This document shows, piece after piece, positions 17,135-24,771 of a stretch of DNA of 64,000 bases; positions within the stretch are counted from its first letter, which is position 1, and each line of letters begins with the position of its first letter. Position numbers and translations under genes: made by a program. Location of the stretch: positions 364,921 through 428,920 of the forward strand of contig JAKMXF010000297.1 in the NCBI GenBank assembly GCA_024704765.1, in the 5' to 3' direction. Source of the stretch: Oopsacas minuta (Eukaryota; Animalia; Porifera). The notes beneath the pieces are model-generated. The model did not search any database and was not told the DNA's origin. It worked only from the letters and a program-made list of their open reading frames with translations.

Positions 17135-18066
17135 TATAATATACAAATTAGTATATGGTAGTAGTAATAATTTCTGAATTCCTAATTAGCCCACTCTATA
17201 ATCAGGATACTATATACTCAGAATCAAGGAAAGATGATTACCGTACTAAGAAATTATAAGCTGATTCCAAACACATAGAATGATACTGATAAACTATCAT
17301 AGTGTGATCAATATCATGATCAACACGTCTCGCGTGATGAGATAGGGAAATTTATATGAGTTCATTGAGTCTAGTTTCAAAGGTTATGAGGTTTTGTGAT
17401 ATGGAAGTGGTGTTAATTTTAAGATATGAACTATATAGCAAAATCGGCATAGATGATAGATCGTCTTTGTTGAAACAATCCCACTATTAGATTTCTTATT
17501 AAAGCCATTTCAAATCCTGGTTCAGTTACTCACCATTAGAGTTTGAGTAGAATAGTTTGGCAAGAATAACTCCGTAGAGAAGCATGCGAATGTAAGCAAT
17601 AAAGTTGATAATAAATAATGTGTAGAAGTTTGCCTTTGTCAAATATATAGTAAAGATTCATAATATAATACTTAGTAGATAAATTACACTGCACCATCTA
17701 CGTTGCACAATAAGTTACGCTATTCCAAATAGTGGTCAGTCTGACATTATAAATACGCACGTGCACCAGTACAACATGTGACTATTTATAGAGTTGGAAA
17801 TGAGATTAAAAATAAAACTAATGAAATGAACAAGAATAGAATTATATTAATCGTATTGAGCCAATGAGATCGTTTGACTTCAGATGCCAGTAGACACAGT
17901 TGCGAGAAAATATCTGTGAATCGATTCAATGATTGATAGGTAGATACTGAAGAGACTGAAATCACACATAAATTATAAATTTCCGATAATTAGTCGAGAT
18001 AAATTATATAAATATAATAACTATATACAAATTAGCTATTACTAAACTAATATAGTAACACGTGCG

Positions 18067-21000
18067 CTACGCGAAACCATCTAAAAAATCTGATTTTGGT
18101 TGCTCAATGAAATCAGCTGGTCTGAAGAAGAACAGATATAAATTATAGAACTTGAGAGCTAATGAGCGAGCTGGTATCTTGTTAGTCAGATCCCTATTAC
18201 CTGTGATATTGAAATACTGAGTACGTCTAGCAGTAATATAGCTGAACTGTACATAGCAGAGCAATCCTCCCTGTATAACCACCAATATATTGTATGTCCA
18301 CATAGCAGTGACCCAAGGCTCGTATGTCCATCCGTATGAGAAGACAGGATATGGATGTGCAATCCCTGCCGCCTTAGCTAAACCGATGTATCCCATTACC
18401 AGCCATAGAACAGAACAAGTGAAGAGAAGTGCTACCATAATGACAAACACACGATGGTTACGGTGGCCCACACAAGTATTCATCCAAGCACAGTGGTGAT
18501 CAAATCCCCGGACACACCAGTCACATAACTTACAGTGTTTCGTTTTTGGGGGCTGAAAAATACCACAAGCAAAGCAATAAGTATATTCAGGGATGATATT
18601 CTTAGCGAGGTCTCGAATTGTAATATCTCCTTTTATGTGTTCCTTCCTCACGACTCCTGGATCCATGAACTTAGCCCGCAGGTAAAGGAAGAGTGCTACA
18701 AACCCGAGTATAATGTCAAATGTCATAAAATGTCCATAGTCTTCCCAGAGCAATGGCACGCCCCTATAAAGCGCACAAACAGCCGAATGTATCAATCCAA
18801 GGACTAGCCAGCCCATGGCAGCTGGGTTGGAGGGTCCGGCAGGATGAGGAATCCTGTGGGTGTGTATCAATAACTGAGGTACACCTACTATTAGAAAAGC
18901 AGCAGTCGGGAGAGAATACCAGAGGGAGTAATAAGTGAGCAGATAGAATGCTACTGCCATGGACAAACCAGGAGTTAGGAAATTAAACAACCAGTTATGA
19001 TACGGCCAAGCTAGTCGCGGGTAATTTGCGATAAATTCAGCATTAGCAGCCCGCACCTTCCCCACGAATGGGTCCATAGCTCCAGCTAGTTCTCCTGGGG
19101 TGTAATCTTCTCCATTCTTCATACGTATCTGCTCCCTACCTCTCCTTCTAAACAGCTCCCAGATAATCCTGTTGTTGGTAAGTCCCTCTTTGAGAGCATA
19201 ATGAAGAGGAATGTTATTGACTGAGTCCTGACATACAGGATCAGTCCTCATCTCTCTCATCAGGAATACTACCATCTCGTAACAATTCCCCTTAACAGCT
19301 ATGTGTAGAGGGGTTTGTAGCTTGCTGTCTGTTGTGGAACAGGAAAATGAGTGTACATCACTCAGATATAGAACTATCTCCATACAGTTATAGGCAGCAG
19401 CTAGATGCATACAGCTCTGTTCTCCTGGAGCTAATGAGTGTAAATCTGCTCCTAACTCAAACAGCAAGTTCAGCAGATAAAGGTTTCCTTTCTTAACAGC
19501 TATATGGACAGGGAAATAGTCCTCTCCATCTGGTGTGTTCATGTCTGCGTTGTTACGAGCTAGGACAGTTAAGAGGTGTGGCCTTTCTCCCTTAGCAGCT
19601 TTATGGACTAACGTGTCACTCTCCATGTCCCGTATATTGATGTCTAGGTTCTTTTGCTGGAGAACAACCTCAAAGTCGGCCAGCGGTCTCCCGTCCCTAG
19701 CAACCAGGAGGTATGCATCGAATACATCCTTTATCTAAAGGGAGATGTATCAGCAAACATACATATGATAGCATAGAGATATAACTTATAAGTGATTAAT
19801 AGCCAAATTAATAGGATAATACACGAACTATTCTGTAGATTATAAGTGCTATTATTATAGAGAGTAGGATAGAGAAGTATAGACTGTCTGGTGCAGTAGT
19901 TAGTTCTGTGTCTTGTAAGTACAGAGACTGGTAGAGAGGATAGAACAGCTGATCAGTGTCGTAGCAAGGTTCACGACATACAGGAGTGTGTTTCAGATAG
20001 GAACGAGGTGAGGGAGGGGGAGGTGATGTAGGTACTAGTATAAACTCTATACTTGCGGTTACAGGTATTTTCCAAATACCATCAACCAGAAAAAGCTGTA
20101 GATCTGGTACTCTCGTGTACTCCACCTCAGTAGCAGCTCCTACTATCTCAAGGATTTGGTAGTCATTAACAGCACCTGTATTAGAGTACAGATATCTCAT
20201 AGATAGATGGGAGGGCAGGTAGCAGTGAGATGAATTAGGAGGGTTAGTGAGTGGTTGATTGATTGATACCCAATGTTCTGGATGTGCCTTAGAGGCACGT
20301 CTAGATCTAGCTACATGAGTAGCACTCAACATACCATGGATAAACTGTTTCAAATCTTGTTGGAGATTTGTACAATTAAAATTAGAAGAGATCATAAGAT
20401 AACAGCCTGAGTACAAGTTGTTAAGAAATTTGATATTCCTCTTTATAGCTGTAGAGCAGTATCCGTTAGAAGAGGTTATGATAGAGACAACTGATAGATA
20501 GAATGAGTTAGTTGTATCATTCAGAGATCCGAACAGAAGATTACTCCCCTGTATGTAGCCCAAAGTAAGCTGATCACTGGCTACGGTGTCTAGTGGGAGA
20601 GTTGTATTGGATATATGTTTGTAAGATATAGTATGTTCTTGTTGTATGATGGGTATAGGGAGGTGTAATGGTAACCGGATGAGCACAATGTCGTCTTCAA
20701 TACCTATTACTCCATCTCGTAACCAGGTTATGACTCTGTGTGAAGACAAGAGTACGTATTGACAGCTGTCAGGTGAGCAGGATAAGTTAGAACACTCGTA
20801 AAACACAGATGTATTCGGTAGAGATATTCCATGAGTATTATCTGCTGTGTAAGATAATACCCAATCTGTGTAGTTAGTACATAGATAACTAGATGAGATT
20901 GATACCAGATCGACAGGTGAAAGAATAGATGATAAAGAGAGTGAGTAGGGAGTATAAGATATACAGGTAGATTGTATTCCATGTAAATAGGGAGTGGGTG

Positions 21001-21544
21001 AGAATAAGCACTCACCATGTGGACCAGGGACAGGATATGTAGAATAGTGTGGAATATTGTATGTCAGTGAGAAGGTAGGGTCACCATACTTATAATAAGT
21101 ACTAATTCCAACGGACGGAGTGGTGGTTAAGAGAGGGGACTGGAATAGTTGGTTCCTGGATACCAGAGGATCAAACTCAGCAGAAGAGATATTAGTAGGT
21201 TCCAGGTAGAATAAACCAAGGTATGGACTGTTATCAATAGATACAGATAGAAAATTATTAAGAGAGAAGGACAGAGTCTGCTTAGCAACAGGAGATGTGT
21301 TACAGAATGTTAGTTGTTTATATTTCTCACTACAATCTGTATCACAACAGCAGCTGAGCTCGCAGGTTCGTGTTACGAGGTTACAAGGACAGGAGAGCTG
21401 TGCAGTGATAGTTGTCAAAGTAACCAGATACAAGAATAGAAGTGAGTAACATCTGAGATAAACCATGTACATATAAGGATACTAGTATATTGTATAAGTA
21501 GCATGTAGTTAATCACTCACCTCAAGACTTTCTATTTTATCCAT
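18067..21544 (-). CDS. Ankyrin-repeat DHHC palmitoyltransferase (ZDHHC13/17/Akr1-like); exon 1 21544-21521, exon 2 19734-18067
   Basis: Ankyrin repeats ([20 protein letters not shown]) and [18 protein letters not shown]. The frame is open 36 codons above the annotated ATG up to a ccctttAG acceptor; a phase-0 ATG mini-exon with a GTGAGT donor lies at 21544-21521. Family call is firm, exon 1 is inferred. Confidence 0.85.
19808..21472 (-). CDS. TCTN: Tectonic-family ciliary transition-zone protein, intronless
   Basis: Signal peptide then the signature [20 protein letters not shown]; GY..G and F..N..SGC blocks; hydrophobic C-terminus. Confidence 0.88.
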   Translation of the reverse strand: MYMVYLRCYSLLFLYLVTLTTITAQLSCPCNLVTRTCELSCCCDTDCSEKYKQLTFCNTSPVAKQTLSFSLNNFLSVSIDNSPYLGLFYLEPTNISSAEFDPLVSRNQLFQSPLLTTTPSVGISTYYKYGDPTFSLTYNIPHYSTYPVPGPHGECLFSPTPYLHGIQSTCISYTPYSLSLSSILSPVDLVSISSSYLCTNYTDWVLSYTADNTHGISLPNTSVFYECSNLSCSPDSCQYVLLSSHRVITWLRDGVIGIEDDIVLIRLPLHLPIPIIQQEHTISYKHISNTTLPLDTVASDQLTLGYIQGSNLLFGSLNDTTNSFYLSVVSIITSSNGYCSTAIKRNIKFLNNLYSGCYLMISSNFNCTNLQQDLKQFIHGMLSATHVARSRRASKAHPEHWVSINQPLTNPPNSSHCYLPSHLSMRYLYSNTGAVNDYQILEIVGAATEVEYTRVPDLQLFLVDGIWKIPVTASIEFILVPTSPPPPSPRSYLKHTPVCREPCYDTDQLFYPLYQSLYLQDTELTTAPDSLYFSILLSIIIALIIYRIVRVLSY

Positions 21545-22341
21545 AAGGTTGAATCATCAATAACAAGCTAGTTAGGGTTGTAATTGTAAATTTTGCCAGT
21601 TTGTAAATCGTAACAATCTAATTAGCCTAATAATAGGTCGTATCTTAAATGAATTTCCCTTACTATGAGAGGAACCATTTATAAATTATAATTTCACATT
21701 AAAATTTCTATTTCCGTTGAATCACTTGCTAAATAATATTATAGAGCAATTGTTAATAATCTATTATCTCTGTATGAACATATAATTTGAGCAATTTCGC
21801 CTTTCATAACTCCAAACCTAGTGTAACGCCTGTATTACTGTAATTCTATGCGAAGTAAATAGTATTTTGGGTTGGTGATTATATATATATATATAAAGAT
21901 TTGTTGAGGTTGAGTGCACTAAGGCATCGTATTGATCATTGTAGATATATAATTAATTGATTGAATTGCAAGTGACACTGTTACTTGCGAGCAAGTTGCA
22001 TTGTGTATTTGTATGGGGCTTAAAAGGCTAGAAAAAACACTATCATAGTGAGTTCGTCAACCATTGTTATCTGGTGTTGTATGTTGTAACCAACATGAGT
22101 TATACAAAAGCTTAAAGTTCATGAAAATTGTAAATTATTGACTTCAAAACTGTAGTCAACAAAGAAACGTAGATTCGGAAACACACCAATGTCATTTAAT
22201 GTATTCACAAATAAATTACAACAAATATACCGTATTCAAATACAAATATAAATACCTCAACAAGGCTTGTAGGTAATACAAGCTCAAGTCTATTTCCTAA
22301 TACAAAATACACAAAGGATAGCAATTACATTACAAGGGATA

Positions 22342-24771
<2,430 letters not shown>

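Follow-up and report, generated by a model that had tools for sequence, protein, structure and literature searches.

On the minus strand of the window, that is, the whole stretch of 64,000 nucleotides from Oopsacas minuta analyzed here, a tectonic open reading frame (ORF; 19808–21472) is read from the sequence and is followed, 73 nt on, by an ankyrin-DHHC ORF (18067–19734). The preliminary description of this region had placed the first inside an intron of the second and had named both proteins, and Pfam agrees with both identities (PF07773/PF25752 and PF01529/Ank_2, respectively). In the downstream ORF, the DHHC domain (PF01529) is matched at residues 383–508 with an E-value of 1.3e-24 and Ank_2 with 1.7e-24. 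Ank_2 (in three stretches), Ank_4 and Ank_5 are all N-terminal to the DHHC domain, which is the architecture of Akr1/ZDHHC13/ZDHHC17, and the DHHC motif itself can be read at 18500–18480. Residues 13–36 encoded by the exon 2 described below align with the N-terminal repeat of a DARPin, and its first 36 codons constitute the ankyrin N-cap. The gene is single copy in the O. minuta genome, which holds two more ANK-DHHC paralogues at 24–27% identity, and the best non-sponge match is just 26% identical.

The tectonic ORF is matched by PF07773 (DUF1619) at residues 305–455 (E 6.8e-12; score 46.5 bits, cut-off 22) and by PF25752 (DUF1619_N, cysteine-containing) at residues 26–69 (E 2e-07). Its N-terminus is hydrophobic and reads as a putative signal peptide, and another hydrophobic segment lies at the C-terminal side. 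Judged by family membership, a role at the ciliary transition zone may be predicted for it. The features of the locus are as follows.

21571–22341, minus strand: AT-rich spacer (GC 0.27–0.33) from the glutamate dehydrogenase stop to the exon 1 acceptor, with an ATTAAA at 22200–22195; outron and/or promoter region
21568–21570, minus strand: TAG acceptor before DHHC exon 1, spliced-leader recipient; TAG/CT invariant in 8 loci
21521–21567, minus strand: DHHC exon 1, 47 nt, from the sequence and an RNA contig bounded by the spliced leader (21569) and exon 2 letters (21521)
21537–21557, minus strand: upstream ORF of 6 codons (MIQPYG, then a stop) in the +1 frame, overlapping the main ATG; sequence reading
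21515–21520, minus strand: intron 1 donor GTGAGT, from the sequence and the RNA junction; GT(G/T)AGT in all relatives
19735–21520, minus strand: DHHC intron 1, 1786 nt, with the whole tectonic gene inside; RNA junction in run X4, DNA runs colinear
21482–21483, minus strand: AG acceptor 10 nt 5' of the tectonic ATG; the RNA contig of tectonic begins here
19808–21472, minus strand: tectonic gene, intronless, 554 aa; from the ORF, Pfam, an RNA contig and orthologues
19735–19807, minus strand: spacer of 73 nt from the tectonic stop to exon 2, which must house the tectonic 3' end signals as well as the exon 2 pyrimidine tract and AG
18067–19734, minus strand: DHHC exon 2, 555 codons and stop, with ankyrin N-cap, ankyrin repeats and DHHC domain; Pfam

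Exon 1 consists of a 23-nt leader, an ATG at 21544 and seven more codons. Its coding letters (21544–21521, ATG GAT AAA ATA GAA AGT CTT GAG) specify MDKIESLE, and a genome-wide search found the exon to be unique in O. minuta. The leader-bearing mini-exon, its donor and the second (tectonic) acceptor are all packed inside 90 nt. An overlapping upstream ATG comparable to that of the 6-codon ORF is present in five of the eight aligned loci. If intron 1 is retained, the exon 1 frame runs through to an 11-residue peptide, as read from the letters. The exon 2 acceptor (ctccctttAG) ends at 19735 and exon 2 opens at 19734 (ATA AAG GAT GTA TTC...); a TAG codon immediately precedes this, and therefore the DHHC frame opens exactly at the acceptor. 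The first in-frame ATG occurs only at codon 37 (19626), after 36 codons without one. This open frame was found at the exact coordinates given in the preliminary description, and the phase-0 mini-exon, the GTGAGT donor and the 1786-nt intron enclosing the whole tectonic ORF are also as stated there.

RNA junction and spliced leader

Run X4 is the one run that behaves as RNA: it contains a GT..AG joint (CT..AC on the forward strand) from 22734 to 23111 in the neighbouring glutamate dehydrogenase (GDH) gene. The O. minuta genome paper lists one RNA-seq library alongside its DNA libraries (PMC10280926). The depth of X4 is uneven along the stretch and goes down to 26 inside the GDH intron.

At the loose end of one X4 contig, the end of exon 1 (21521) is joined to 19 letters that are the reverse complement of 19734–19716, identical at 19 of 19 positions. 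This is the 21521 to 19734 junction that had been named in advance as the decisive test, and it was seen in one contig. The genome has one copy each of exon 1 and of the DHHC gene, which means that a DNA retrocopy does not account for the joined form. Moreover, contigs of the DNA runs X1 and X3 are unbroken and colinear across the intron region. A retrocopy or an assembly chimera as the source of the junction was ruled out on these grounds. The tectonic gene is complete and expressed (an X4 contig of 1645 nt), with the same strand as its host. In short, the first DHHC intron contains tectonic in the orientation of its host, and the host exons are joined in RNA. Approximate X4 depths, obtained by rough arithmetic on depth bins, are about 1250 for the exon 1 contig, 1100–1470 for the DHHC contigs and 470 for tectonic; contigs cannot reveal transcript starts, ends or amounts.

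Ahead of exon 1, the X4 contig also has 11 letters, reaching to 21569, that are not those of the genome there (AAAAAACTTAC, minus strand). Followed by AG, AAAAAACTTAC is the 3' end of the exon of a spliced-leader-like (SL-like) gene. The 11 letters plus AG occur nine times in the genome, against two occurrences for a control pattern, and all nine are then followed by GTAAGTTGG within a homologous unit, some 160 nt long, that has a TATA-like box. The SL-like gene family numbers about 20 copies in the O. minuta genome. The length of the SL-like exon is estimated at 41–45 nt, which fits the 41–45 nt of the A. vastus spliced leader (PMC10282587). The SL-like RNA folds no better than shuffled sequence (z = -0.54), and no Rfam family was matched by the SL-like gene or by the 64-kb window. 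The SL-like exon holds no ATG, which rules out the leader as the source of the DHHC start codon.

Conservation and the DHHC start codon

We compared the locus with eight related assemblies (ENA, Logan). The acceptor, the mini-exon, its donor, the nested tectonic gene and the 555-codon exon 2 are kept in all eight, so the arrangement put forward in the preliminary description is conserved in related genomes. Alignment of the orthologous DHHC N-termini, also envisaged there, showed that the mini-exon peptide is conserved and the internal ATG is not. The peptide follows MD(K/Q/G)I.(S/N)LE, with synonymous changes in its codons. The recurrence of this 8-codon exon with its donor and acceptor in eight assemblies, with synonymous changes, is more than chance when taken together with the RNA junction.

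Exon 2 comprises exactly 555 codons after its acceptor in 10 of 10 loci, and an out-of-frame ATG is always found at nt 8. Its first in-frame ATG is at codon 37, 25, 68 or 109 (109 in five loci). Since this ATG is not conserved, ranging from codon 25 to codon 109, the start is supplied by the mini-exon, and ATG 19626 was ruled out as the main DHHC start. For annotation, this means that the DHHC protein starts in the mini-exon (563 aa) and not at ATG 19626 (519 aa), a start which would lose the ankyrin N-cap. Automatic or prokaryote-style callers mis-start the DHHC gene in every related assembly, at GTG or at internal starts.

The tectonic orthologues share 45–59% identity and each lies directly upstream of DHHC exon 2, with the gene order GDH-tectonic-DHHC kept in the relatives. 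Interleaving of the two genes may explain why they have stayed adjacent in all relatives despite such divergence of tectonic.

Origin of the two mRNAs

The X4 tectonic contig aligns with 21483–19842, preceded on the 5' side by 3 letters that do not match the genome; no X4 contig covers 19735–19841, a span that includes the tectonic stop codon. The preliminary description had offered three routes to a tectonic mRNA, namely retention of the intron, intronic polyadenylation and trans-splicing at the AG 10 nt 5' of the ATG. The evidence favours the last of these, because the tectonic contig begins at that AG and a spliced leader was seen on exon 1. All relatives possess an AG 10–40 nt 5' of the tectonic ATG.

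Because AG is the end of the leader and of exon 1 alike, the alignment start alone fits either as the donor of the 3 letters. Exon 1 could be a shared first exon, cis-spliced either to 19734 or, over a 39-nt intron, to 21481, in which case 11 residues would be added to the tectonic N-terminus. Such a join to 21481 also gives an alignment from 21483 with unmatched letters, and it is in frame with the tectonic ATG in Oopsacas. However, in L010 the join hits a stop (ATT ATC TGA) right after the acceptor, and therefore the frame from exon 1 into tectonic is not conserved. An intron of 39 nt is also far under the 341-nt average of the genome (PMC10280926), and a contig reaching exon 1 should hold up to 30 letters, not 3. 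We regard a shared first exon as highly improbable.

We read this as a conserved glass-sponge locus in which DHHC is a two-exon gene with a leader-bearing mini-exon and tectonic is nested within it, and we think it probable that both mRNAs are alternative products of shared upstream transcription. Exon 1 (47 nt) gets the spliced leader at its 5' acceptor, codes for MDKIESLE only, and is cis-spliced over the 1786-nt intron to the 555-codon exon 2, giving a 563-aa protein that starts from exon 1. These steps were observed, as was the carriage by the intron of a complete, intronless, expressed same-strand tectonic gene. Trans-splicing of the leader to the AG at 21482–21483 would most likely create the 5' end of the tectonic mRNA, and cleavage inside the 73 nt ahead of the exon 2 acceptor would create the 3' end. 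The DHHC and tectonic mRNAs would then be mutually exclusive products, in that cis-splicing would remove tectonic while trans-splicing and polyadenylation would keep it. The tectonic acceptor is 38 nt past the exon 1 donor, and therefore any tectonic precursor has to begin in exon 1 or further upstream.

The same gap bears on the view that the two genes are independent transcription units, with a tectonic promoter overlapping exon 1, just upstream of it or in the first 38 nt of the intron. Tectonic mRNA would then never come from the DHHC precursor and the nesting would be merely positional. In other animals, the nested genes that have been studied are mostly driven by promoters of their own, and the apparent depths of tectonic and DHHC given above are unequal. 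Nevertheless, with 38 nt between donor and acceptor, the outron must reach into or past exon 1. Moreover, upstream of the exon 1 acceptor, the acceptor itself is the sole conserved feature: among the relatives we found no conserved promoter block upstream of exon 1, and no conservation past about 30 nt upstream of the acceptor. Independent units are in our judgement rather unlikely.

Shared transcription could also extend further, with GDH, tectonic and DHHC forming an operon with one polycistronic precursor that is resolved by the spliced leader; the functional DHHC mRNA would then arise by trans-splicing at 19734, leaving the exon 1 junction as a minor by-product. All three genes point the same way and are separated by short spacers, in an order kept in relatives, and a single X4 contig extends without a break from 22691, in the last GDH exon, to 21540; glass sponges are known to trans-splice (PMC10282587). 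Some leader may also be joined directly to 19734, as 155 rows lie beyond the loose ends listed. However, a contig spanning two genes does not prove a single transcript, the junction of exon 1 with exon 2 was observed, and the depth of the exon 1 contig is DHHC-like. An mRNA starting from 19734 would meet the out-of-frame ATG at nt 8 and no conserved in-frame ATG, whereas the protein sequence of the mini-exon is conserved in all loci. Operons have also not been reported in hexactinellids (PMC7986045). Such an operon seems distinctly improbable.

Returning to the two-exon host gene with a nested tectonic, we tentatively suggest that trans-splicing of the leader may be how glass sponges extract same-strand genes from the introns of their hosts. 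A single precursor beginning upstream of the mini-exon could give DHHC by cis-splicing, or tectonic by trans-splicing and polyadenylation in the 73 nt before exon 2. If true, this would be an interleaved kind of polycistronic expression and would give the first indication that hexactinellids transcribe genes in an operon-like manner, and it would explain why glass-sponge genomes tolerate thousands of nested genes.

Comparison with known systems

Nested genes and leader trans-splicing in glass sponges have already been published, and the tectonic-DHHC locus is a well-supported further case. In A. vastus, 2432 nested genes (12.4%), mostly single-exon, have been described; nested genes are conserved between hexactinellids and easily mis-annotated, and the automatic annotation of O. 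minuta contains merely 83 of them (PMC10282587). The rarity of same-strand nesting implied in the preliminary description is not upheld, since nested genes make up about 12% of A. vastus genes (PMC10282587). Being compact, conserved and RNA-supported, the locus is a handy test of the competition between trans- and cis-splicing for intron-nested genes in glass sponges.

Like the nested genes of A. vastus, tectonic is a complete gene, mostly single-exon in that set, in the intron of another gene; the tectonic-DHHC pair, its strand relation and a leader-bearing host first exon of 8 codons are absent from that paper (PMC10282587). The cholinergic locus of C. elegans (unc-17 in cha-1 intron 1) and unc-60 likewise encode two unrelated or distinct same-strand proteins; the first intron of one gene contains the other, the 5' exon is tiny, and alternative pre-mRNA processing decides which product is made (PMC3875643). 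However, the mRNAs of those C. elegans loci share their first exon (PMC3875643), whereas in Oopsacas the RNA contig of tectonic begins at an acceptor of its own and a shared exon 1 is not supported. ChAT and VAChT of the cholinergic locus act in sequence, whereas the tectonic-DHHC pair has no known common pathway. With the SL-resolved operons of nematodes and tunicates, the locus has in common close, co-oriented genes, a leader added a short way ahead of the coding sequence, seen here for DHHC exon 1 and probable for tectonic, and the need to form a 3' end within a few dozen nt of the acceptor that follows. In contrast to those operons, the Oopsacas genes are interleaved and not serial, and DHHC coding begins upstream of tectonic.

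The arrangement of the locus and its conservation

The preliminary description placed the tectonic gene on the same strand within intron 1 of an ankyrin-DHHC gene, and all the elements that it named were found at their coordinates on reading the sequence. The minus strand carries glutamate dehydrogenase, an AT-rich spacer, the block of mini-exon (exon 1), tectonic and exon 2, and then more co-oriented genes.

Features of the locus (window positions)
Between 24771 and 22342, minus strand: glutamate dehydrogenase exons
21544-21521, minus strand: DHHC mini-exon, ATG GAT AAA ATA GAA AGT CTT GAG, with GTGAGT next
19808-21472, minus strand: tectonic ORF, 554 aa (PF07773 6.8e-12, PF25752 2e-07)
Ending at 19735, minus strand: exon 2 acceptor, ctccctttAG

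Exon 2 is preceded directly by the codon TAG, so its reading frame opens exactly at the acceptor; it is 555 codons long, has its stop at 18067 and encodes ankyrin repeats together with a DHHC domain (PF01529 1.3e-24). The earliest in-frame ATG is codon 37, and the codons ahead of it are coding, because residues 13-36 align to the capping repeat found at the N-terminus of designed ankyrin proteins. The genome contains exon 1 only once and has a single copy of the DHHC gene, whose paralogues are no more than 27% identical to it. Two of these ankyrin-DHHC paralogues lie at C111:303647-304900 and C300:120613-122097 of the O. minuta assembly G000 (ORFs of 560 and 562 aa, 24-27% identity). Moreover, a short upstream ORF (MIQPYG and a stop codon; 21537-21557, minus strand, +1 frame) overlaps the DHHC start codon; comparable overlapping upstream ATGs are present in the related loci L010, L018, L019 and L011 and absent from L014, L015 and L020.

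Orthologues were sought by protein search with each exon separately and were found only in ENA/Logan assemblies, with 75-83% identity for DHHC (53% in one) and 45-59% for tectonic. Eight distinct loci have enough flank (L010, L011, L013/L014, L015-L017, L018, L019 and L020), and all eight keep the arrangement: both genes are on one strand, and tectonic immediately precedes the DHHC ORF; the dehydrogenase lies upstream wherever the flank extends far enough. In every locus an invariant TAG/CT acceptor (TAG, cut, CT) stands with the rest of the mini-exon block 72-99 nt before the tectonic ATG, followed by 17-26 nt of leader sequence, a mini-exon ORF of exactly 8 codons, MD(K/Q/G)I(E/D/A/N)(S/N)LE, with synonymous differences (ATA/ATC, CTT/CTG), and a GT(G/T)AGT donor. 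The exon 2 acceptor is pyrimidine-rich in each locus, and exon 2 then begins with I(K/N)DVFDAY and is exactly 555 codons long. Insertions after tectonic make intron 1 vary in length, between about 1.8 and about 3.4 kb. The insertion in L010 (about 830 nt) carries a palindromic CAACAACCGC..GCGGTTGTTG motif that is also found upstream of exon 1 there (sites L010:2860-2885 and L010:5205-5235), and that in L013 is about 1.6 kb. Assembly ERZ25069837 contains the locus in two versions, L013 with a tectonic ORF of 579 aa and L014 with one of 547 aa.

The earliest in-frame ATG inside exon 2 shifts among codons 37, 25, 68 and 109, and an out-of-frame ATG stands at nt 8 of exon 2 in all loci. In most of these species an mRNA begun at the acceptor of exon 2 would therefore be translated poorly. 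The DHHC start is the conserved mini-exon.

Leader, exon 1 and exon 2 in one RNA

The RNA evidence consists of contigs of public runs, not single reads, and three runs (X1, X3 and X4) come from one sample. X1 and X3 are DNA-like: their depth is flat (77-92), and single contigs match 17700-22656 and 17700-21764 colinearly. X4 has the marks of RNA: it contains the canonical GT..AG joint 22734->23111 in the glutamate dehydrogenase gene at depth 570, against 26 within the intron, its depth is very uneven elsewhere, and the spacer positions 19738-19809 are covered by none of its contigs. According to the genome paper, RNA-seq was sequenced together with the DNA libraries (PMC10280926). Inside this intron (22735-23110), positions 22953-23090 are a short high-copy repeat that looks like a miniature transposable element, with a summed DNA-run depth of about 1800-2100 versus about 80 alongside and many contigs branching off. 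X5, a 2024 run labelled as another organism, is colinear over 18083-21436 with 67 differences over 2399 nt (about 97% identity), has nothing over the spacer 21580-22161, and probably represents DNA from a close relative or a divergent population.

The splice 21521->19734 had been set beforehand as the decisive test, and it is present in X4. The contig on exon 1 stops matching at 21521 and continues with plus-strand CATCGAATACATCCTTTAT, the exact reverse complement of 19734-19716. By rough arithmetic on depth bins, its depth is about 1250, closer to the DHHC contigs (1100-1470) than to tectonic (470). None of the DNA-run contigs branches at 21521, which together with the single-copy exon 1 and DHHC gene rules out a DNA artefact.

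At the other end, exon 1 is matched up to 21569 and is preceded by 11 letters absent from the genome there (minus-strand reading AAAAAACTTAC). A pattern search of the genome found AAAAAACTTACAGGT 9 times and its reversed control 2 times. The nine sites all carry the same repeated unit: a TATA-like box, an exon of about 41-45 nt with CTTACAG at its end, the donor GTAAGTTGGC, and a small hairpin showing compensatory changes; similarity search gave 20 copies.

Spliced-leader-RNA-like genes (about 20)
G000 C10:47219-47379 (also given as L001:1440-1600), and about 19 other sites on C10, C16, C19, C41, C133, C166, C312, C313, C335 and C348

The exon is about 43 nt, ends in CATAAAAAACTTACAG, and in this estimated length fits the clipped leader of Aphrocallistes vastus (41-45 nt; PMC10282587). 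The 11 letters belong to this spliced leader. The leader exon has no ATG and is thus ruled out as the source of the start codon. The leader gene matched no family in Rfam, and its RNA folded no better than shuffled sequence. The RNA joins the leader to exon 1 and exon 1 to exon 2, tectonic lies within the removed intron, and the proposed gene model is correct and conserved.

The tectonic RNA

Tectonic, too, is represented by abundant RNA. Its X4 contig (1645 nt, depth 470) matches from 21483 to 19842 after 3 unmatched 5' letters, so its start coincides with the AG located 10 nt ahead of the tectonic ATG. X4 has no contig over 19735-19841, which holds the final 11 codons of tectonic, its stop codon and the 73-nt spacer; a filter, polymorphism or heterogeneous 3' ends may be responsible.

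We suggest that the 5' end would be made by leader trans-splicing at 21482/21481 and the 3' end inside the 73-nt spacer. Leader and exon 1 both end in AG, so the contig start alone would also fit exon 1 cis-joined to the tectonic acceptor; however, this joining is disfavoured, as it would need a 39-nt intron, its frame is shut by a stop in L010, and the contig has only 3 extra 5' letters. With trans-splicing as the preferred reading, the precursor must still include or start within exon 1, because the tectonic acceptor lies 38 nt past the donor. A common upstream transcription region for tectonic and DHHC is therefore likely, and the idea that one promoter yields two proteins is a plausible hypothesis.

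One X4 contig runs continuously over 22691-21540: it links the last exon of glutamate dehydrogenase to exon 1 and covers all 770 nt of the AT-rich spacer between them; ATTAAA occurs in the spacer region at 22200-22195. This contig may represent read-through, a long 3' UTR or an outron. As contigs cannot show single molecules, it is only suggestive of a longer precursor.

Comparison with known systems

The main value of these results is a corrected DHHC gene model, and the locus is a compact place for testing how cis- and trans-splicing compete. Mechanistically, the closest analogues are the cholinergic and unc-60 loci of C. elegans (PMC3875643), in which splicing can join a tiny first exon to different gene bodies downstream; unlike there, sharing of exon 1 is not supported in O. 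minuta. Leader trans-splicing has been published for glass sponges, and operons have not (PMC7986045). Nested genes are a published hallmark of glass-sponge genomes: A. vastus has 2432, of which many are conserved, and the 83 listed for O. minuta reflect under-annotation (PMC10282587). Nesting and leader trans-splicing are thus already known in glass sponges, and the tectonic-DHHC pair is a new, well-documented case.
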